This document shows, one piece after another, positions 1 through 21,557 of a stretch of 64,000 bases of DNA. The first letter of the stretch is position 1. Every line of letters starts with the position of its first letter. The stretch is from Klebsormidium nitens (lineage: Eukaryota > Plantae > Klebsormidiophyceae), in NCBI GenBank assembly GCA_000708835.1, contig DF236959.1:357728-421727 (forward strand), in the 5' to 3' direction. Made by a program: the position numbers and the translations under genes. Under the pieces are notes generated by a model that saw only the letters and a list, made by a program, of their open reading frames with translations, was not told where the DNA came from and did not search any database.

Positions 1-1014
1 AGCTTGGGGGCAGGGTTAAAGTCAGAGGGGAAGTGGGAGGCTACTGGGGGGACTGTGGGCTGGGCGCTGGTGGATGGAAGGGGGAACCGCCGGGTGTTGC
101 GACTTTTGTGAAGTCGGAGTCGAAAGTTGGGGCTGGGGCGGACGGAACAGAGGGGGCGGACGAGGGCTTTGAAATTTATAGGTCTGCTGTGAGTTTAGAC
201 GCGGAGGTGATCGACGGAGCCAAAGAACGGAAGATGAACGTTGGGGAGATTGATTTTTTCGTCATGATGGTTTCAAACGAGGCGGGGTTGGTATGCAGGG
301 ACTTCGTGTTTTGACCGACAGAGCAAACAGATGTGAATCTTCGCTTGTGCTAGAAGGAAGAAGGAAATAATTGGCAATCAAGTGGCATGTGGGTCCAAAG
401 GGAAGACGCATCCTTATTGGAATGTCAAGATCTGGTTATGTCTTGGATTCGGTTGATCTCTGACTATACGGAAGGCACTGATTCAGAATGCCAGCGACAT
501 CCAACCACAGACTTTCGTTTAGGGCTTAGCTAGGCAGCCAGCGCAGGGTGTTACCTTAGTATAGACTTTAGTTTATATCCTGTACCGTAGCGCATGCCCG
601 CCGAAGTGCGGCGTCATTGAGAAGGGAATTTGAAATCCTTTTAGAAGAGGGTGGCGATCATCTGTAGTTACATACAACAGACCGCCATAGTTGCTTACAT
701 ACCTACATTAGCAGGCTAATAAATGATCTAGAGATACTAGTCAGAATAATCACTTGGATGCTGAGAGTGGAAGTTCTTCAACGTGGTTTATGCAGGAGAC
801 TCTAGCTAACTGTAGGACATTTCAAGATTGCTTTGGAGCTAATCATTCTGGGAATCTGTCGCAAAGGGGTCGGACGAGCCTGTTTGTCCAATCGACGTGT
901 GTGGTGCGTGACATGGCCGACGAAAGCCTCACACTTAAGGCTTGGTGCAGCCTAGGTCACTGGCGCCCGCGGCCCATTAATCGAAGGACTAGCTCATGGC
1001 CGCGTTCACACAAG

Positions 1015-1957
1015 NNNNNNNNNNNNNNNNNNNNNNNNNNNNNNNNNNNNNNNNNNNNNNNNNNNNNNNNNNNNNNNNNNNNNNNNNNNNNNNNNNNNNN
1101 NNNNNNNNNNNNNNNNNNNNNNNNNNNNNNNNNNNNNNNNNNNNNNNNNNNNNNNNNNNNNNNNNNNNNNNNNNNNNNNNNNNNNNNNNNNNNNNNNNNN
1201 NNNNNNNNNNNNNNNNNNNNNNNNNNNNNNNNNNNNNNNNNNNNNNNNNNNNNNNNNNNNNNNNNNNNNNNNNNNNNNNNNNNNNNNNNNNNNNNNNNNN
1301 NNNNNNNNNNNNNNNNNNNNNNNNNNNNNNNNNNNNNNNNNNNNNNNNNNNNNNNNNNNNNNNNNNNNNNNNNNNNNNNNNNNNNNNNNNNNNNNNNNNN
1401 NNNNNNNNNNNNNNNNNNNNNNNNNNNNNNNNNNNNNNNNNNNNNNNNNNNNNNNNNNNNNNNNNNNNNNNNNNNNNNNNNNNNNNNNNNNNNNNNNNNN
1501 NNNNNNNNNNNNNNNNNNNNNNNNNNNNNNNNNNNNNNNNNNNNNNNNNNNNNNNNNNNNNNNNNNNNNNNNNNNNNNNNNNNNNNNNNNNNNNNNNNNN
1601 NNNNNNNNNNNNNNNNNNNNNNNNNNNNNNNNNNNNNNNNNNNNNNNNNNNNNNNNNNNNNNNNNNNNNNNNNNNNNNNNNNNNNNNNNNNNNNNNNNNN
1701 NNNNNNNNNNNNNNNNNNNNNNNNNNNNNNNNNNNNNNNNNNNNNNNNNNNNNNNNNNNNNNNNNNNNNNNNNNNNNNNNNNNNNNNNNNNNNNNNNNNN
1801 NNNNNNNNNNNNNNNNNNNNNNNNNNNNNNNNNNNNNNNNNNNNNNNNNNNNNNNNNNNNNNNNNNNNNNNNNNNNNNNNNNNNNNNNNNNNNNNNNNNN
1901 NNNNNNNNNNNNNNNNNNNNNNNNNNNNNNNNNNNNNNNNNNNNNNNNNNNNNNNNN
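1015..1957. other. Assembly gap (943 N)
   Basis: Continuous N run. The ORFs listed across it are artefacts. Confidence 0.99.
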
Positions 1958-2821
1958 CAATAGCCCGGGTCGTTATACAGAGCTTGAGCACAAGCCTGGC
2001 AGGTGCAGCAAATGCCATGCCAGGCGCACGCATGGCGCGCCCACGTGAAAGTCATGCGGCCGCCGCCGCCCCATGGGCTTCTCATCGAGCACTATATAGC
2101 TCCGAGAAACGATCGAGCTGCACCAGCCGGTGGGTTAGTAGCCGCATGTATGCACTGCATGAGCCGTCGGCTGGCATGTGAGTCCGGTCCGATCTAGCTA
2201 TCGCCGTTGAGTGCGCGCCGCGGCCATATAAGCCCGGCAGACTCAGTCTACTGTGAGTCATCACATAATATGGTCTCTTTTCGTTCTCGCTGGAGCCAAA
2301 TAGGCCATGTAGGCTTCTCACGGGATGCATGTATGATTGTGTGCCAGCCCATGGGCCCAATTTGCTAGCTGATTGTTCGTATCAGCATGAGTAGTTAGTA
2401 GGTTGAGCAAGAGTCGACAAGCCAACAATAAATTGCTGTCAGGCCAGTTGCACCAAGCTGGGTGCAATTGCATGGCAGCACACTTGAAACGTGGACGCAA
2501 TCGGAGCTCTGGAGCCGAAGCCGTCCCGAAGTCTGCTTTCCAGGCGGTCAAGTCGACTCCAGATTGCTCTCACAGTTTCAGCAATACAGAAGACCTTTTG
2601 CCTGCCAGAAAACCACCAACGAACGCCGCCGAATCATCCAGGGGGACGCGATAGTGAGCCAACGTTGAAAAAGCAGTCGGCAGTCGGGTTGCATGGCATC
2701 TAATGAAGCTTATCGGACTGGCACTTCCTGCTATCAGCGGGTGTGACTCTCAAGTGGAACTTCAGGGCAGAATCAAGACCCTAATCAGTGACGGAACTCT
2801 GGAACGAAAACGCGTGCTCTC

Positions 2822-5143
<2,322 letters not shown>

Positions 5144-5856
5144 CCCACTGCCCCTGGATTCCAACTGACAGCTTCAGAAACAAAAATGGAGCTGCGGCAG
5201 GAGGAGAAGAAATTTGCCGCTTGATTGGGTCACCAAGCTTCTCCAACTTCACCAGCTTGCAGAGAAAAGGCCCACACCCGGAACAAATGATATAAGTAGG
5301 TCTGTTTATCTCAGCTGAAGATGCTAAGAGCCACAAACAGGAACAGCCGAATGTGCCAGTGAGCTACACACGATCTCTGGGGCCGTTCAAGTTTTAGGGG
5401 CGCCTTTCTCCACCTGTGCTCATGCAGCAGACTCGTGATTTCGGGTCTCGTCGTTTGTCATACGAACCGAATGGGTCTGAAGCCGAGGTTAGCATCGAAT
5501 CATCTCGAAGTACCTAAGAGTCCCGAGATCTTCCACTGAGTGTTAACGACGACGACCGACTATGTGTCAGCTTTCACTAACCCGAAAACTTAACCCTGCT
5601 GTCACAGTACCTGAAACCAACTTTCCTTCAAAGCAGGCATGATGCACCAAAATACAATTTACGACGTACGACGTGCAAAGAGAGGATGGAAAAGTCGAGA
5701 ATGCAATTCCCATCTCGTTTTTCCCAGACAATTTAAGGCAGCAGCTTCCATGCCGGTGGAGTGTTCCTGCGCTCCAGAGCGCCAGTACAGTTCAGCTCAG
5801 CCATCTCAGTCTTAACGATGAGCGCCTATGCAGGGCTGTGACAATCTGCAGCAAAC

Positions 5857-8800
5857 ATGCCCCCTTCTTCCTCCTTCTTGGCGTCAGCGCCAGCAATTGG
5901 GGGCACGTTCCGGAAGACCAACGGTTCATCTTCGTCAGGTAGGCTCTCCCGTAGCTTTTGTGGTCTCTCTTGACATGCTGCTTCTGCGAACGTTGGAGGG
6001 ATGCATTTTAGGGTTCCGTGAAAATTAGGGTTCCAAGCACTCAAATCTCACTTTGAATGCGTTTGGCCCTTCTCCCGCAAGCATGATGCCCCTAAACTGC
6101 CGAGAGAGTTGATGCCGTGTTTCCCTCGGTTTCTGCAATTCCAGCTGCATCCTGCGCGCTCGCTTCCATGCTGAGACACTGACTAAAACGAGCAATCTTG
6201 CCTCATCTGGCCCCAGTCAATAGAACCGCCCTACAACAAAAGAAGGAGCTTACACTTGTCCAATCCTTTTGCATTCCTACCGGTAAGCTTGTTCTGCTAA
6301 AGATCGGAGTGGGGACAGGGAGACAGGAGTCATGGAGCCAGGTGTAGTGAGTCAGTAAACCAGCAACTTAGACCCGAGGTTTGCCAATACCAAATCGCCT
6401 GCTTCTCTTCCCCAGCTTCCCTTGCTGAGCTGGCTCCGCCCCCCTTGGCAAGCAATTCAAAAAGGCGGAGCAATGTGGAGGACACGGCAGCTATAGACGC
6501 GCTCTTTGACGATGGGCCCAAGCAGAGGAGTGAGGGGCTGTCTACAGAGTGTGCTATTTGCAGAAAAAGCAGTGTCATAGACGACCTTTCTTTGTCATTG
6601 ATTCATCAGAATGTGTGTTCATGCCCCGTTACAAGGTGTCTCAAAAGTTGGGTCATTCAGCAATTCTTGCTGGAGCTCAAGTACCATCCAGGTTCCTATT
6701 CAACTCTGCTGTTCTTGCGCCGCACTCATACCGCAAATCTGGTCGGAAAGAGCTTGCTGATTGCAATGGTTGTATAAGTCTGGCCCCCACTTATGCTTGG
6801 TCAACCGATCAGCCTTCCCTAACGGGGGTCTGGTCACCTTGTAGGTGGCAATGCCCCAGAGAAAGGCTCAAAAGGGAAGGGTCGACAGAGCGTACACCTG
6901 AGCACAACCGACGCTTTGAAGACAGGTGCGAAGCTTACAATACTCTCTATAATCCCTTTACTCATTTTCATCGTCTCAGCTTTTTGGGGGCTTGGGGCAA
7001 CACTGAGCGCAAGATCTCACGCAGAGGCCGTTGCTATTAGCGTTTGCTTAGGTGTCCTCGTTGGAACTGGTAAGAAGATTCACAAGAGGCTCCTTGAAAG
7101 TCCTACTGAATGCAAGAAATCCGGATCACCACCGTTTCAGCTAAGCAATAATAGAGCCATTTGGCACCACTTGTTGAGTCCCAGCTTATCATCCGCGATG
7201 CACTTTGGCAGACTTGACTGACCATGCTAATCATACTTAGACTCTCTGCTTCCAGATTCCCTTGAAGTTTACCGAACTCGCCCCACTCTTCATCTCACAA
7301 TCTCCATTCTCTGGTACCTTTTGTACTTGAATCATATTAAACTTACACCGATATTTCCCTGCAGACCCAATCGACAACCCCCCAAAGAAGAGCGTGCTCA
7401 AAAGCGCCAGCCCTGCCCTAGCCCTCCTCTCTTCCCAACACAGTGTTTCTCTCAACGCACAAAAAGACGATGCTTCCACCTCGAGGCCTTCGTCTAGCTA
7501 TGGCATCAGATCTCAGTCATCGGCAGACCTTTTGAACTCCGACTCTGAGCCGTTCGGAAAGGAGGGCGGCAAGAGGGACAAACCGAGGGTGACCTTTGCG
7601 GAACCTGTGAGGGATAGCTGGGAGAAAGACGAGCTAAAAGCGCACGGAGAAGTGGGGCCGTCCGATAGGAGCGGTGGTTCGGGCGTTACAAATCCGCAAC
7701 ATACAGGAAGGGAGGGGCTTGCAAAGCCGAGCGTTTTTGGATCTTTGGAGGGTGACTCGCTCGATTTTTTGGGACTTGGATCGAGTGCCGCGGCGCCCAA
7801 AACGGGGCGAAGAGGCAGGCCGCCGGTGTCTGATGTAGGCACAACCGGCCAACTTGACTTTGGCGGCGCAACCACGTACGCTGCTCCGTTGCTTCAGAGC
7901 TCTCAACAAAAGAGCTTGAAAGAACACCCAGAAAAACCAACGGATAGGGCTTTGCCAAAGGAGGAGACGACTGACTGGGGCGATGCAGACGACTTGCTGG
8001 CGATGCTGCCGGACGGCTCGGGGGCCCCATCAAAGAAGTCGAGTTCAGAGAGTCCGCCACGTGGCACCGTTCAATTGGCTTCTCAGCAGCCTCGCAAACT
8101 GGTCTCTGCATTTGAGGAGAGAGCGGGCGTTTCCGATTCTGAGCCAACCGTCGCCCCGCTTCCGGAGGTCTCGGGATTGGGTGACAGTTTGCCGGCAGCG
8201 AAGGAAACTGCCGCTCCTGATTTGGGAGGATACACCCCTTCGTTTCTGAACAACACGGGGAGAACTAGAAGGGCGGGCGTTGGTCTGGGGAGGAGACCGC
8301 CGAGCCCCCTCGTTTCGGACACGAGCGTTTGGACGGAGTCGGAAGCTCAGAGGCGTTCGATGGGCGGCTTTCGGACGGAGTCGGACGCTCAGGGCCGTTC
8401 GAGGAATAGCGGTTTGAATGGTACGGACGCCCTGAAGCGTCCGATGAGTGCGGACCAGGCTCGGAGTGGTCCGCAACTAGGAAGCGCGCTGGGCGGCCGT
8501 CCGGCGACTGCTGACGTGTTCCGAGACGCTAGAGTTCCGCCCTCGCTGGACAGCAGGAACGGAGTGCCTGCTTCGGGTTATTCTCCGAAAGCAGATACGC
8601 AAAGAGCGGCTGGTTTCGCAGGTACAAGCAGGGGCGCGGGGGCTGCCAAGACGAGTCGGCTCGTGAATGAAGCTACAGAAGAAGAGCCGTTTCTCCGGCC
8701 GGCAGAGACGTCGGGACGGCGGAATGACAGGGCCGAAGAGGAGTTCGTGATGAGACCGGGCTCGGGGGGATCCCTCCGGGGCAGGGACAGGGAAGGTGAC

Positions 8801-11800
8801 GCAGTGGAGCAGGTGAGCTTGTTCTGTTGGAGCCGTCAACGCAATGGAACAAAAAGAGGGAGTTCCGTGAGGAACTCTGAGATGTTTAAAGAAGCCCATG
8901 CCTTTCGACATGTTCCTCGGCAAGAGTCTTACCGAAGCCTCAGGCGCGTGCAATACCTCCTGCACTCTCCAGTGACGGAAGTTGTTCCTCGTCTTTCGTA
9001 AGTGATTGCATGGCAGAAGCAGTGACTGGCTCGATGTCGATGGCGAGTACGTGCACTTACTTGTCAAGCAGACACATCCAAAGGTTTACATGGTAGTCAA
9101 TTTCTGGCTCTTTCATGCTCTCGCTTTTGTACCTGGGTCGACGACCAACGAAAGGAAGGAAAGAGCAGAAAACAGAAGGGAGAAGATCGCTAAAAGTGTG
9201 CTGCGTGCGTAGTGGAACGAAAAGAGATATAAAAGGGAACTGAACAATGCAAACAAGTACTGGGTTTGCACTTGCAGGCAGAACACGCGCGCGCCCTGGC
9301 CGCGCTCAGGGAGGAGATGGCCGCGAGCGCTGCGAAGGCCGCTCGCGAGCGGGAGCTGCTGGTCTCACTGCACCAGCAAGAGCTGGCCGCACGCGACCGA
9401 CAAGCGGAGGAAGAGGTTCGTCTTGCGGCCTGTTGAATCGGTTTGACTTTACTTGCTTGTTCCTCTGGTTCCATCTCTTCTTTCTCTTCTCTTTTGAGAT
9501 TTGACAGCTGCCGTCCGGAACCAGCCTACGGAGCAAGAGGTTCGTCCAGTACTAATCTACACGATTTAGGTCCTGTCTTTGCTTGTTCTTGTGAAGCCTT
9601 CTGTTTTTTACTTTCTAAGGCTGCTTAAACCTTCAGGTGCCGCCATCGATCAGCAACTGGAGCAAGATGTCTCTTTGGCCTTTCGCGAGAATTTCCGAAC
9701 TTTCTTTTGCACAGTCTGTTCTTGATGTGTATCTTGGCTCTCTTCACCTGGCGTCTTGCTTCTTTTACGGAATACACTCACTTGATCAATGTTGCTAGCT
9801 TTCGTGCAGTGTTAAGCCTCGAGCAGACTCTGTTCCCCTAACTCTATAAAGCTCTCCGCTGGGTGCTTAAAAAGCATATCGTCTCGAGGACCATGTCTAC
9901 GCTTTGAAATGACCAAGCGTAAAACGACCTTCTTTTTGCCTCTGTGATAGAGGGCCTTTTCCTCGGAGCACCAGAAGAGCCTGGACGTGCTCCAGAAGCT
10001 GGTCGCCCAAGTGGAGTCCTGGACTGCGGAAGTCCAGCACATGAGCGAGGCGACCCGGTCCGATAAGGAGAAGATGGTCGCAGGTGAGAAGCGGCTTCCG
10101 TGTCCTGCAAAGAACGCTTTCTAACCTTTGGCCGATCGCCGGGAAAGTGGTATCGAAGGGCGTCAGGGGTGCCGCCTTCGTGTTTGAATTGGGAGCTTAC
10201 CCGGGTTGTGTACGGTTAACACCGTGTGCTGGTTTCGTCTGTTTCCGCTCTTGGGCTTTGCACCGCCATCCCTCCTCTTGTTCCCGAAAACATGAAGAAA
10301 TTAATTTGAAAACCAGAATAAACACTGGGCTTTAGCCCAGTGTTTACCGGAAGACGACCTCATGCGAAACGTGATCCACGGATGTCAGAAGCCAACCGAC
10401 CAAGCTCGATTCATCCGGTCAAGGAGATTGAATCAATCTGTATGTCTCTAAGGGCAGTGATGTCAGAAACCGACCGCAGAATTCTGCGGGAAGTGGCTGC
10501 TTTTTAGCGATCGGTCCAAGAATTGTCACTTCCAGCGCCTCGTGATACACACTGCTTTACACAGAACCGGTCATTTCTCGAATCGTGCAGAGAGAGCGGA
10601 GGCCGTCCGGAGCGGCGAGGCCGGCCTGGCCGCGCGCGAGACCGCGCTCAGTGCGCGCGAGCAGCAGACCCAGAGCGCGACGCAGCGGCTAGATTTGCTC
10701 ATGGCGACGCTAGACGAGAGCGTGAAGGCGCTGCATAGCGGGCAAGCGGAGGAGAGGGCGCGGCTAGAGAAAGAGCATGCGAGACTGCAGGTAAAACCCG
10801 CAAATTGTCGTTCCCCAATCTCCGTCTTCCCTTGTTACTGGTTTAGAATGTGGTTATCTGTAATCATAGCTGGAATGCGGCTCTTGCCTTACGTGTATGA
10901 TTTGATTCTTTTGCGTGCTTGTTCCAGGGTGCGCCGTTGTCGAGGATCGGTTGCAGCTTTCAGGGGTCCTGCAGTTGGAAAGATCGAACAGAAACTCCGT
11001 CCTTTTGAGGAAGTTATGTTCCTAGCTTTTTATAAGCTCAGGATAAGCGAATGGAAATGCGATAACTAGGACGCATACGATATGGCCTCAGAGCCTGCCA
11101 GGGCCCAACCGCAGCTTATGTTATGGATCCGCTCCGTGCGCAAAACTCTTACTCATTCTGTCCGTCGGCGTGCAGTCCCTCCAGGAGTCCGTTCTGGCGG
11201 AACGTTCCGCCGCTCAGGCGGATCTTGCGGCAGCGCGCGAGCGGCTGGAGGAGATGCGGGACGCGCGGGTGCGCGAGCGGGAGCAGTTTCTAGCGGAATG
11301 CGAAGCGGAACGCAAGGAACTAGCAGCGGAACGGAAAGCGCTGGGCGACGCCAAGGAGCAGGTGTGCCTGGCGGAAGCGGAACTAGACGTGCGGATCGCG
11401 CAGCACGAGGCGAAAGTAAAGGTGAGGGGTTTCAGCGATCCAGGGAGGGTCGTAACACTGAGGGCCCTAGTATTACTGTGCGTTTGATATACTGAGGATC
11501 TTGAAAGGTTGCGGGACTTTCATCAAGAATCATGTTCTCGGACTTGGCGAGAATATCACATGTCAAGATCAAAGGGCGAAGTTGAAGTGAATCTAGAGCA
11601 GTGGCGCGTGGTGAACCAGGTTTTGCTTGGTTTAGTCTGTTCCTTTTACAGATATTCTTTGAGAGCGCAGGTCAAGAAGGTAATCACAAACATCGGTGCA
11701 TCTCGTAGCAAAGTCTTTTTCTCTTCTCTCAGAGTGAGACGGAGGCGCTCGAGCGCGAGCGCCTGGACGTCGAGAAAGTGCGGGAGTGCGCGCTCGAGGA

Positions 11801-13770
11801 GGCGCACGCGATTCAGCGCGAGCGGGCCGACCTCGAAGAAGAGAAGGCGGCCCTGGCTGCGGAGGTGGATAGCGTACAGGAAACGGCGCGGCACGCGCAG
11901 GTGGGGGCAGCAGAAGTTCCTGAAACTCCGAAGCTCAAGGATCCAAAATCCCTGAAGTTTTGAGAGCTCACCAGGGTTTCCAAGTTTACGATCCCCTTAT
12001 GTGCGTGCAGCGCTTCTGAAAAGCCCAAGAATCTCACCGATGTTTGCAACGCGGAGATCCCCTTCTCGCGTGCATTGGAAGTCAGACCCCGACACCTGAC
12101 GTGGGCAGCTTTTTGGACCTCTGCAGAATGCCCTGCTTTGCGCGTACTCAGCTAAACTGTGTGGTCATCATTGATATTTTTACAAGCGAGGATTTACAAC
12201 AGGCATAAGTCTGGAAAGCCCCCAGATGATCTCCTCGTACAGGGAGCTAGACAGAGCATGCAGAACCCGGTGCACAATGTCCGAAATTCACGGACCGAAC
12301 TGCTCGAAGCTCGCACAATACGATTCTGATGTACCGAAATACTGGAGTACAAGTAGCACAATCACGAAAGGATGAAACGCAAATCCTGAACCCCCAACCG
12401 TGCGTTACGCAGGCCCAATTCGTGAGGCGGCCGCCATTCGCGACGAGGCCGCGCTGCTGCAAAACATAAAGCACACGCGGTACATAATCGACAACCAAGA
12501 CAATCACGTACAAGCAGCAAAAGAAGGAAAGCAAGAAACGCAAACCTGAGCCCATCACTCTTGCGTTACGCAGGCCCAGTTCGAGGAGGCGGCCGCTATT
12601 CGCAACGAGGCCGCGCTGCTGCACCGCGACGCAGAGGCGCTGCACCAGGACCGCGTCGAGCGCGACGCGCGCTGGGAGGCGGAACGCCTAGAGGTAAACC
12701 TGTTGAGCCTTCGTCGTGGTCTGGTCTCAAGAGCTTTTTGGGGGGCCTTTCTCGGAGGACACGGAGGTTTGTCCTGTCCATTCTACCGGCGGGCTTTAGA
12801 TTGACCAATTTTGATGCGTTTGGAACGTTTGCTTTGGCGCGCCCTTCTTGATCCTAACACATTTCGAGCGCTCGAGGAGATGAATGACACCCGCTGGAGT
12901 GCGGCGCGGATCGGAGTTGCCGCTAGCACAGTCCCTTTGCGAGGGGCCATGCTGAAGCAGGGCAATGATGGTTGTACGTTCGTGTTTTGGGGTTTTTCGC
13001 GCCAACACAGATGGTTGCGGAACGAAGGACTCAGCCTAGTTGTTTTCCAAAGCATTGGAGCAGCCCGGTGGCGCTAGTGACTTATACACCACAAGAGTTG
13101 CACAATTTCAAATGGCTCATTTTCCGATGCCTCAATCCCCACTCAACGAGAGCAGGAGTGCCACCCTCTGTGTCCAGATTGAAAAAGCGCGCGAGAGCTT
13201 GCTGGCTCTACGGCGGTCTCTCGACGAGGAGCGGTATCAGATCGCGCAGGAGCGGCGCAGTGCGGGCGACGAGAAGCTGGAGGCGGTGCGCATGGCGGAG
13301 TCCGCGCGGCTGCTCATGCAGAAGGCGGGCGGAACGGGGACGGAATCGGGGGAGCGGAAGGAGAAGTGAGCACCACTATCGCTTCTCTTTCTAGGGTTCA
13401 AATCTCGATCAGATTCGTGAACAAGGGTGACTCTAGGATTCATAATCTGATCAAACTCGTGAACAAGAGCGAGAGGAACTCATCGAGCGAGAGAGCAAGA
13501 TCTAAGGGGTTTACTCAAACTTGCGTCGTTGTGGTTTAATACCGTCCTATAAAGGCGAATATTCAATTGCTGACGCGATCCATAGATTGCCTCCTGGAGA
13601 TCTGACGTTACTCCGCCTTGGTCACGTGCAGCCTTCCGGCGGAACGCCCTTCCGCCGCCACCAAGAAGAAGAAAAAGTACGCCAACCTAGTTCGGGCGCT
13701 CGTGGGCGGCAGCGGCACGCTCGACGACGTCCTCGCCGCGCGCCTGGGCGCGGCCGCGGGGGATCCCTAG
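5857..13770 (+). CDS. FBF1-like (Fas-binding factor 1 / centriole distal appendage) coiled-coil protein, about 12 exons, about 1013 aa (about 1153 aa if the TAG at 13768 is read through)
   Basis: Phase-consistent exons 7365-8812, 9278-9415, 9951-10083, 10591-10790, 11176-11421, 11733-11900, 12574-12693, 13178-13365 and 13632-13770. The 5' exons 5857-5938, 6217-6282 and 6416-6529 are tentative. A disordered Ser/Gly-rich N-half (WGDADDLLAML) precedes an E/R/A-rich coiled coil. Segments such as SEHQKSLDVLQKLVAQVE and EERARLEKEHARLQSLQESVLAER resemble FBF1 as I recall it. The family call is an inference. Confidence 0.6.
10319..10346. repeat. Perfect 12-bp-arm hairpin taaacactgggc-ttta-gcccagtgttta (intronic)
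   Basis: The arms are exact reverse complements. Confidence 0.9.
12371..12461 (+). repeat. Intronic echo of the acceptor plus first ~50 nt of exon 12574-12693
   Basis: tgcgttacgcag|gcccaattcgtgaggcggccgccattcgcgacgaggccgcgctgctgca versus tgcgttacgcag|gcccagttcgaggaggcggccgctattcgcaacgaggccgcgctgctgca. Offset 161 bp, with a 1-nt deletion in the echo. Confidence 0.92.
13391..13470. repeat. Degenerate 2 x 42-bp tandem repeat in the last FBF1-like intron
   Basis: ctagggttcaaatctcgatcagattcgtgaacaag versus ctaggattcataatctgatcaaactcgtgaacaag. Confidence 0.75.
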
Positions 13771-15417
13771 CAAAGAGAGCGCGAGCAGGGGCGCGCGTAC
13801 CTCCAGAGCCAGGCCGACTTCCTCGCCCAGGCGGAGGCGCGCGCGCGCGTGCCTGTGCACGCGCGCTTTGGGCGCGCGCGCTACTGCAACCTGGACGTTA
13901 TTGAGGAGTTGCCGCGGTTTCGAAAAGGGTTTGAAGGGTTAGCCGAAACAACCGGGCGGGATCGGATACCCCAGTGGGAAAACGCGGGGACGAAAGCGGG
14001 GTTTGGAAGTCGGGGGGTGCAAACCAGGGGGGAAAGCGAAGTGGTTAAGCGGAGCGTCGACGAGCCGCTTCGGTTTCCTGAGCCCTATGGGGAAGGCGAG
14101 GGGCAGTCGGGTGGGTCTCGACATGTGGCTGGGAAGAACGCGTCAGAGGTGGATTGGGCGGAAGATGAAAGCGCCCGGGGTCGTGCTTGATGGGTGATAG
14201 TTGGCTTACATACGGGCAACGGGACACGCGACTAACCGGCGGCAGAAACCTAGTATTTCAGGTCAACATTCTAAAATTTACGGGCGTACTGACAGGAGAG
14301 ATCGAGTAATTCCAGTAAAGCCTTCCTATTGGATACTGATCGTACTTCCAATGGCTTGGGCCAATAAGCAGCATTCAATGGTCTTGAAACGCGCAGAGTT
14401 TTCTCAACGTATGCTTGTTTATCTGCAACCTGCAAATAAGGCCGACAAACCCAATGTAATTCTACGTACTGAGCAACTCGCCGTCGATCGATGCATAAGC
14501 GTTGTTAGCTGTACGGCGCTGTAGACGGAAGGTCGCAATATGGGACTCAATAAAGCATCTAGCTCTCTTCATTTTTGATTGGCGACAGTGAATTCAAGCA
14601 TCAAACTGCCTGCAGCACGATCAGCATGCTAGCTTCTATCGTGGAGAAGCACATTGGCTCACCCCTGTCCAAACCTGGTTCAGCGTACGTACAATATTCT
14701 GCACAACAGTGTTCTGAAGCTCACCGTAATTTCAGTGATTGCACGCGGGAGCAATAACAGCGATCGCATGGCCATCGGGGAAGCAGAAAGCAAGGCAGCT
14801 AAAGCTCGCCTGATCTGGCACGGGTCGCAACTAATCAGACCTTCGATAGTCCCGCAATGCTGAGCTGATTGTGAGTCATCCTCGGTACTCAGCTAGCTAC
14901 AACAGCCGTACGCCGTGTTGCCACGTCACCCATCGTCAAGCTTCCATCTCGCAACCCGCGGGCTTGGCCCAAACGGCCGGGCTAGTCTTGATCGGGTGTC
15001 GAGCTGCCTTTGGAATTAAGCAGCACTGTGATCGATTGGCCGAGCTGTCGACACCCGCGTTCGAAGCGTCTGGTTTGCCATCGCCGTTTTGTAGTCTTCT
15101 GGCTCGACTTGAAAAGGCCTTGTCGAAACAGCTTCCTGAGAGGGACTGCTCCTCCTCCTCCCCTGGTATTTTAAGGCTGCCTCATTGTGCAAGGTAGACG
15201 CAGATCAATTCAGTTTCCAGCACTAAATCAGCATTTTTGCTCCCTCCGATTCGCCGCTCCGTTCATAAGCTAGGCTGCGTTCCTATTCCTGAGCGGGACC
15301 TTTCGATTTTTCGAGGCGGCAAACGGAGCATGCGCCGTCAGTAAAAGGGAAAGGCGGCAAGCAGATCGAAAAGGCACGTTTCCAACGCCCATCAAGCATT
15401 TGAACGGAGCTACAGCC

Positions 15418-20166: not shown

Positions 20167-21557
20167 AGACCGGACATCGGAATCACCACGGAAATTAGGC
20201 CCAGAAATGTACATATGCAATAGTTGGCTCACAAGTGCAGTACACTTAAAGTCTAGCCGTTAGAATGTGGCGGACCATACCACGTCGAGTTAAGGCTGAG
20301 AGAGCCAAAAAAGATGCGAAAACGAATGGGTAAGAGCTTCATACCCAGACTAAACATGTAGCCGGGCTGCACCTCACGAAATAACAGGGGTGATTGAAAA
20401 GATTGGGCCTCAAGAAGCACTAAACGGGTGGACTTGGAAGTCAAGGGTCCAGATAAAGAAGACGACACTAAAATGAGTAGTGTTTAAGGTCCTACTGTAC
20501 CTCATGTGCAAACGACGAGTTTGCGTGCCGATGCCCTCAGGTTTCGACATCTTTTCGAGACGGCGTGACGTGGTCAATGGCGATAGGGCTCTGTAGATTG
20601 TCGAGAGTTCAATATGTTTTCAGTACACCGAGTGACTCAAACAGGGCGTCCGTTGTTTCGCGTGGCGTGGTGTCGGAAAATGTATGGCTCTTGCATCGGA
20701 CATGCACACATGAGGGCGTACGTCACCAACATGATTGAGCAGTAATCAACATGAACACGATTGCTAACCACCTCAATTTTACTACAAGCCTCTGCGCGCA
20801 CCTCGCACTCTCCTGGAATTCGGGAAGTCCATCTAATTAGTCGCGCTTGATCAGCTGACAGTACGGTATGCACTGCCAGCTTTGAATCGTCAAAATCACG
20901 TGGTGAAGTGCTCTCGAGCAACCAGCGGTAAGTAAGCGGCTCAGCTCCGTGACTGGCGCCCATTCAGGGTGAATCTAAGCACGTTCGTTCTTCTCAAAAA
21001 ACCCTGTATCCGCACTCGGTGGATCCAGACGGCAAGCCGTCCCGTGGATGATGTTCTTGAAAACAGCGCATGGGAGACCGGTCCGGTCCAATGGCAGGGT
21101 TCTGCTGGTTCCGACCTTCTGTTGCTCCCCCTTTGAATTCTGAATTTTGTAATGACGCTAGCACCTTAGCCAGAAGCCTTCTAGCGAAGCGAAAAGTTGT
21201 TAAAGTCAGCATCTTTTGGACCAACGCGGGCGTCGGCTGGCCGCCCGCGTGCACGGTCCGAGACTCGCGGGCTCCCGGAAAGGGTTTGGAGGGTTTTGGG
21301 TACTGAAACTCGGGGTTTTGAGATCCTGCGCCTCGGCCGCCGAGACCAAGGCGGCCGCGCGCCAGGTACGCAACTGCGACGTTCGAAGTTTGCACCGTGC
21401 ACCGTCAGCGCTAGCTGCTAGCAGCGCTGACTAGCAGCGCTGAACAAAGCCATAGCTACTGTAGTGGCGTTGTTCACGCACTCGAAAAATGTACTAGGAG
21501 CCAAAATGTCTCCGCTCAAACCGAGGATGCAGCAGCAGTAGGACTTAGAAGCGCGAA

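Follow-up and report, generated by a model that had tools for sequence, protein, structure and literature searches.

A private in-frame TAG at a conserved tryptophan codon in the last exon of an FBF1-like gene of Klebsormidium nitens, best read as a recent nonsense allele

The stretch of Klebsormidium nitens DNA analyzed here (64,000 nucleotides (nt) of contig DF236959.1, hereafter the window, to whose positions all coordinates refer) carries on its plus strand, between about 6.4 and 14.19 kb, an FBF1-like gene whose last coding exon contains an in-frame TAG. According to the original prediction this codon lies in a readthrough context and programmed readthrough gives two C-terminal isoforms of a centriolar protein. 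Orthologous last exons from Klebsormidium-like algae do not support that view: all of them encode tryptophan (TGG) at the position of the TAG, and all of them read on through the homologue of the frame which follows it in the window. We favour, with a probability of roughly 0.55, the reading that the TAG is a real and recent nonsense allele (TGG to TAG) of the sequenced strain or species.

The gene model was searched exon by exon. It comprises a large exon of low complexity (7334-8869) and, after it, a series of short coiled-coil exons, and orthologues were found by a word search with the large exon and by further searches, the surrounding DNA being fetched. The loci found in the contigs of relatives were given L-numbers. 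L004 (ENA ERZ23789742), on a contig of 753 nt, comes from the closest relative; L001 (Logan SRR23617307) is 67% identical to the window in the large exon and 91-97% identical in the coiled-coil exons; L002 (JGI 3300060284) and the single contig that carries L003 and L008 (JGI 3300060285) are more distant. L005-L007 (Logan SRR14092358-60) encode an identical last-exon product (P0007) and were counted as one orthologue, so that five orthologous last exons (L001, L002, L004, L005-7 and L008) were available. Three word searches of the protein collection for a copy from the same species returned relatives only, none identical to the window, and metagenome scans with the peptide encoded after the TAG and with an alignment of four sequences gave no match.

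The codon corresponding to the TAG is TGG in five of five orthologues and is embedded in near-identical flanks, the protein motif being GDP-W-Q(K/R)EREQGRAYLQSQADFLAQAEA. L004 reads GAT CCT TGG CAA AGA at this site, L001 reads GAT CCC TGG CAG AAA, and L002, L005 and L008 all read GAT CCC TGG CTG AAG. The change peculiar to the window is a single G-to-A substitution at 13769, which on the minus strand is a C-to-T change at a CAG (CHG) site, a common type of mutation. The stop is thus private to one lineage, it replaces a codon one step away from a stop, and the relatives keep a sense codon. A nonsense allele or a base-call error had been offered in the original prediction as an equally possible alternative to readthrough; this alternative proved to be the better reading, although the ancestral codon is TGG and not the TTG that had been suggested. 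A sense codon in orthologues had also been named there as the outcome that would speak against readthrough, and it is found in every orthologue aligned. No second copy of the last exon was found in the window, and a TAG belonging to a second gene copy was ruled out on that ground. Rescue by splicing, with the AG made by the mutation serving as acceptor, was likewise rejected: it would shift the frame and lead to a stop at 13940.

The sequence following the TAG is coding. Joining the penultimate exon to the last one opens a frame that reads N-LPAERPSAATKKKKKYANLVRALVGGSGTLDDVLAARLGAAAGDP, then the TAG, then QREREQGRAYLQSQADFLAQAEARAR and further residues up to a TGA (Table 1); both the in-frame TAG and the open frame are present as predicted, the latter with 139 sense codons. 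The protein encoded downstream is 60% identical to that of L001 (tblastn E 2e-45) and 48% identical to that of L002 (tblastn E 4e-20), in both cases in the same frame. Among the intact orthologues the ratio of nonsynonymous to synonymous substitution rates (dN/dS) in the tail amounts to 0.28-0.44, and the indels that distinguish the window from L004 (12 and 9 nt) preserve the frame. The terminal TGA is common to the window, L004 and L001, and blastn similarity to L001 ends at 14185. The part of the exon that precedes the TAG is identical in amino acid sequence to L004, with dN/dS of 0.05 against L001. The G/C-ending bias described for the first 30 or so codons after the TAG was confirmed: G+C content at third codon positions (GC3) is 0.90 in these codons as compared with 0.76-0.84 in the upstream exons, falling to 0.63 over the remaining tail and to 0.46 past the TGA. 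The reading that the TAG is an ordinary stop followed by a 3' untranslated region open by chance could appeal to the high G+C content of the region (0.60-0.74) and to another frame interrupted by a single stop (the other two frames of 13771-14187 contain one and five stops). Among mononucleotide shuffles of 13771-14187 only 1.1% keep the frame open, and conservation of the protein in five orthologues that read through, in-frame indels and dN/dS well below 1 refute this reading, to which we assign next to no probability. The first 55 nt or so past the terminal TGA (14191-14245 of the window, 615-670 of L004) are about 89% identical, after which the alignment breaks up; this divergence resembles that of the variable coding tail and probably reflects the closeness of the two taxa.

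Table 1 Features of the 3' part of the FBF1-like gene in the window
Feature	Coordinates	Strand	Description
Penultimate coding exon	13172..13365	+	...IEKARESLLALRRSLDEERYQIAQERR...GERKE; phase 2, ends with AA
Last intron	13366..13631	+	266 nt, GTGAGC...TGCAG; acceptor AG at 13630-13631
Last exon, part preceding the TAG	13632..13767	+	N-LPAERPSAATKKKKKYANLVRALVGGSGTLDDVLAARLGAAAGDP; two predicted helices
TAG	13768..13770	+	Private to the window; TGG (Trp) in orthologues
Most conserved block of the exon	13771..13848	+	QREREQGRAYLQSQADFLAQAEARAR; third and best predicted helix
Predicted RNA hairpins, G+C-rich	13779..13878	+	Inside conserved coding sequence
Variable tail	13849..14187	+	Predicted disordered; motifs HARFGRAR (13858-13881) and EVVKRSVDEP (14038-14067)
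TGA	14188..14190	+	Ancestral terminal stop of the gene in this clade; position of the L004 TGA and of the second stop of L001

Several features of the site resemble conserved programmed readthrough: an in-frame stop is followed by a conserved coding-type extension, CAA is the next codon, and a predicted structure begins 8 nt 3' of the TAG (G+C-rich hairpins with a minimum free energy of -69 kcal/mol, z -2.4 against shuffles). A lineage-specific functional readthrough would mean that UAG-CAA-AGA together with the hairpin makes the stop leaky enough to yield the full-length protein, that the tail is thereby kept under selection and that two C-terminal isoforms are produced. The context TAG CAA AGA indeed agrees with the yeast-type CA(A/G)N(U/C/G)A pattern and shares CAR with the tobamovirus signal UAG-CAR-YYA, and in starting 8 nt past the stop the stable structure is spaced as in structure-assisted readthrough (PMC3542737); the tail has no stop in frame and its motif is unchanged on the branch leading to the window. 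However, cellular readthrough cases have been found through coding conservation beyond a conserved stop (PMC4132726, PMC3542737), and here the stop is conserved in no orthologue. All five having a sense codon instead, conserved programmed readthrough is unsupported, and with it the proposal of two isoforms. Since L004 reads TGG CAA AGA with the same downstream bases, the CAA AGA context represents ancestral Gln-Arg codons; both the context and the hairpin belong to the ancestral coding sequence and did not arise to promote readthrough, and the hairpins are probably incidental. With AGA as its second triplet the site violates the YYA rule of the plant viruses, and in this and in its inherited coding origin the context differs from the tobamovirus signal. 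Near-cognate decoding of UAG would normally insert Gln, Tyr or Lys in place of the conserved Trp, and the unchanged motif is explained equally well by a very young mutation. Lineage-specific functional readthrough is unlikely, and any leak at UAG-CAA would be incidental.

The history of the tail bears on the age of the lesion. When branch changes were counted with L001 as the outgroup, the tail was found to have undergone 28 changes on the window branch as against 14 on the L004 branch (P ~0.03, relative-rate count), and otherwise invariant columns were broken at 5 of 49 positions in the window, 0 of 44 in L004 and 7 of 51 in L001. The 26 codons directly after the TAG contain no change on the window branch, where the rate of the tail itself would predict approximately 5-6 under neutrality (P about 0.002-0.005), which indicates that purifying selection acted on this motif for most or all of the separate history of the window. 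On these counts the TAG is either very young, or absent from the organism's DNA, or still decoded.

Absence from the DNA would mean that the TAG is an assembly or base-call error, that the organism shares TGG with its relatives and that it makes its full-length protein normally. One transition is enough to turn the codon of all five orthologues into that of the window, the motif after it is intact and the gene contains no second lesion, as an error would predict, and the affected base is a CHG-type cytosine on the minus strand, a class in which methylation-sensitive platforms can miscall. On the other side, consensus substitution errors in deep assemblies are much rarer than strain-private nonsense variants, though this is a prior rather than a test. 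No other sign of error is visible either: comparison with L001 revealed no frameshift or stop elsewhere in the gene in approximately 1,100 aligned codons, and every other exon is open and 66-95% identical to its L001 counterpart, for which reason the gene is not regarded as a decayed pseudogene. The published assembly of K. nitens NIES-2285 was built from 454 and Illumina data (5.4 Gb of reads; PMC4052687), and substitution errors, which are rare in deep short-read or 454 assemblies, should be rare in the window if it derives from that assembly. Taken together, we hold a base error to be rather doubtful.

The sequence of events under a recent nonsense allele would be as follows. The last coding exon proper of this FBF1-like coiled-coil gene, which belongs to a centriole/basal-body family and to a Klebsormidium-type streptophyte alga, is 13632-14190, and the TGA listed in Table 1 is the ancestral end of the protein in this clade. 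In this genome alone one G-to-A transition would have turned the conserved Trp codon into TAG, so that translation would halt 139 codons early and the best-conserved helix and the disordered tail would be lost. The TAG lies in the last exon and no exon junction follows it; hence exon-junction-dependent decay should not apply and the truncated protein would probably still be made. Full-length product would arise only from an unselected background leak at UAG-CAA. The data show that orthologues carry a sense codon, that the tail is coding, that the gene is otherwise intact and that the lesion is young; beyond this, the reading presumes that the A at 13769 is present in the organism's DNA and that termination at the TAG is efficient. 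The vegetative state of K. nitens is non-flagellate and flagella are formed only in zoospores (bioRxiv 10.64898/2026.02.05.698958), and a basal-body gene could for that reason carry such a lesion in culture without cost. With an ordinary private amber allele the case shares the single transition, the sense codon in all relatives, the intact rest of the gene and the last-exon position with no exon-junction-dependent decay expected. It differs in that a strongly conserved helix is removed and not just a dispensable end, and in that it is known from an assembly sequence alone.

Four points weigh against a nonsense allele. The synonymous to nonsynonymous split of the tail changes on the window branch (8:20) equals that on the L004 branch (4:10; Fisher P = 1), so relaxed selection on the window branch is not shown. 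The intact motif after the TAG fits a base error or continued decoding just as well. A base error at 13769 is possible on the sequence evidence, and the CAA AGA context with the hairpin 8 nt downstream could allow appreciable leak.

The extent of the putative loss was assessed from an AlphaFold model of the last exon of L004 that drew on only four aligned sequences (mean predicted local distance difference test score (pLDDT) 56). The model contains three helices (residues 11-24, 30-40 and 47-71), beyond which the chain is disordered; confidence is high for the third helix (pLDDT 87-93), the tail scoring below 50. The Trp is residue 46 and directly precedes the third helix. The block TLDDVLAAR..G...GDPW..EREQGRAYLQSQA.FLA.AEA is invariant among orthologues that differ by about one synonymous substitution per site (dS ~1), and most residues from E49 to A69 are invariant across orthologues. 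Judged from this alignment and model, the TAG falls in the middle of the best-conserved element of the exon, where a confidently predicted helix begins. What lies beyond it is the conserved helix (EREQGRAYLQSQADFLAQAEA) and the disordered tail with HARFGRAR and EVVKRSVDEP. The exon matched nothing in Pfam or in a language-model atlas, and a profile search against 1.84 billion representative proteins returned only two Klebsormidium-like open reading frames (ORFs). The C-terminal module, made up of three predicted helices and a disordered tail, is thus specific to the Klebsormidium lineage.

The window is not alone in having a private amber codon in the tail, which is found in three of the six sequences (window, L001 and L002). 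L001 has a TAG at 12984-12986, where L004 has ATG, followed by 25 homologous in-frame codons and then by the shared TGA. L002 has a TAG at 21074-21076, where the window, L001, L004, L005 and L008 have the Trp codon TGG, followed by 16 homologous codons up to a stop that L005 and L008 share with it. The simplest explanation of this recurrence is weak constraint on the extreme C-terminus, together with the single transition that separates TGG from a stop; at the same time it is the only hint of sense decoding of UAG.

One form of such decoding would be restorative adenosine-to-inosine (A-to-I) RNA editing, by which UAG becomes UIG, is read as UGG and gives the ancestral Trp back. A genomic TAG exactly where relatives have TGG is the signature of fungal genes with premature stops such as AMD1 of Fusarium graminearum (PMC5496914), and the fungal editing prefers U at position -1 and hairpin loops, so that UAG is often edited (PMC11156358). 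The window shares with that system the TAG at a position where relatives encode Trp and the intact coding sequence downstream, and the TAG of L002 likewise replaces a conserved TGG of the same tail. In contrast, the fungal system is known only from filamentous ascomycetes and from their sexual development (PMC5496914, PMC11156358), whereas here the evidence is genomic DNA and the A lies in or beside a terminal stem of the predicted fold and not in a hairpin loop. Ordinary G-to-A transitions readily explain two TGG-to-TAG events in a codon one step from a stop. To our knowledge A-to-I editing of nuclear mRNAs has not been reported from green algae or plants, so that a green-lineage precedent is not known to us, no dedicated literature search having been made. 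Editing is accordingly highly improbable. Hardly more credit is given to the broader conjecture that UAG is sense-decoded here, by A-to-I conversion to UGG or by efficient readthrough, and that the tail TAGs of L001 and L002 reflect a lineage-wide mechanism tolerating or correcting amber codons. If true, it would provide the green lineage with its first described case of nuclear mRNA recoding that corrects stop codons.

As it stands the event is an ordinary one, either a one-base change that creates an amber codon within a conserved exon or a mistake of the assembly, and it would become interesting only if decoding of the UAG were shown in RNA or protein. It has nevertheless practical consequences. 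An annotation ending at 13770 lacks 139 residues of the ancestral protein, and where ciliary genes of streptophyte algae are compared, the last exon should be taken in full, up to 14190. A real allele would leave the sequenced strain with a truncated FBF1-like basal-body protein, which could bear on its readiness to form zoospores. The analysis also defines the lineage-specific module of three predicted helices and a disordered tail with EVVKRSVDEP.

The phase-2 intron on which the joined frame depends was borne out by comparison. The penultimate exon ends with ...GAG AA at 13365 and the last exon begins at 13632, the split codon being AA|C (Asn). The arrangement AA^GTGAG...CAG^C with the split Asn codon AAC is kept at all four loci that cover it (window, L001, L002 and L003), although the intron measures 266, 360, 546 and 486 nt, respectively, and its interior cannot be aligned; similarity between the window and L001 breaks off at 13371 and resumes at 13627. 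L004 spans the acceptor side only, and its split codon would be AAT, also Asn. Retention of the intron would lead to an immediate in-frame TGA at 13367-13369 (AAG|TGA), the protein then ending with ...GERKEK. The GTGAG donor itself overlaps this TGA (AAG|TGAGC), and a GTGAG donor is likewise present in L001, L002 and L003.

FBF1/DYF-19 (Fas-binding factor 1) is a distal-appendage or transition-fibre protein of centrioles. The Pfam FBF1 profile (PF21007) matched exon 10461-11066 at profile positions 162-236 (16.4 bits), exon 11167-11445 at 234-313 (17.5 bits) and exon 11709-11960 at 322-380 (14.0 bits). The three matches are consecutive and collinear and total about 48 bits, each being below the gathering score of 45 bits. 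The gene product resembles FBF1 in being a long coiled-coil protein in which three consecutive exons match consecutive parts of the profile, and the host alga makes flagellate zoospores; it departs from FBF1 in that each single match is below the Pfam cut-off and in its C-terminal module, which has no detectable relatives outside Klebsormidium-like algae. On this profile evidence FBF1-like is a reasonable label for the gene, though not a proven one. In amino acid sequence the penultimate exon is 91-92% identical to L001 and 81-84% identical to L002 and L003.

These three loci are also syntenic with the window, having an Arf gene upstream on the opposite strand (Pfam PF00025 on called ORFs); in the window the exons of the Arf-family GTPase lie at 3546-5191 on the minus strand, upstream of the FBF1-like gene. 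Within the gene itself a tandem duplication was noticed (12347-12461 and 12508-12623, with a spacing of 161 nt), which is specific to the window, L001 having a single copy. It repeats the last part of an intron together with the acceptor (TTACGCAG) and some 60 nt from the beginning of the exon encoding AQFEEAAAIRNEAALLH, and its upstream copy could act as a decoy or an alternative acceptor. The beginning of the window (1-2000) is A+T-rich, with a G+C content of 0.27 as compared with 0.49-0.59 elsewhere and a GC skew of +0.25.

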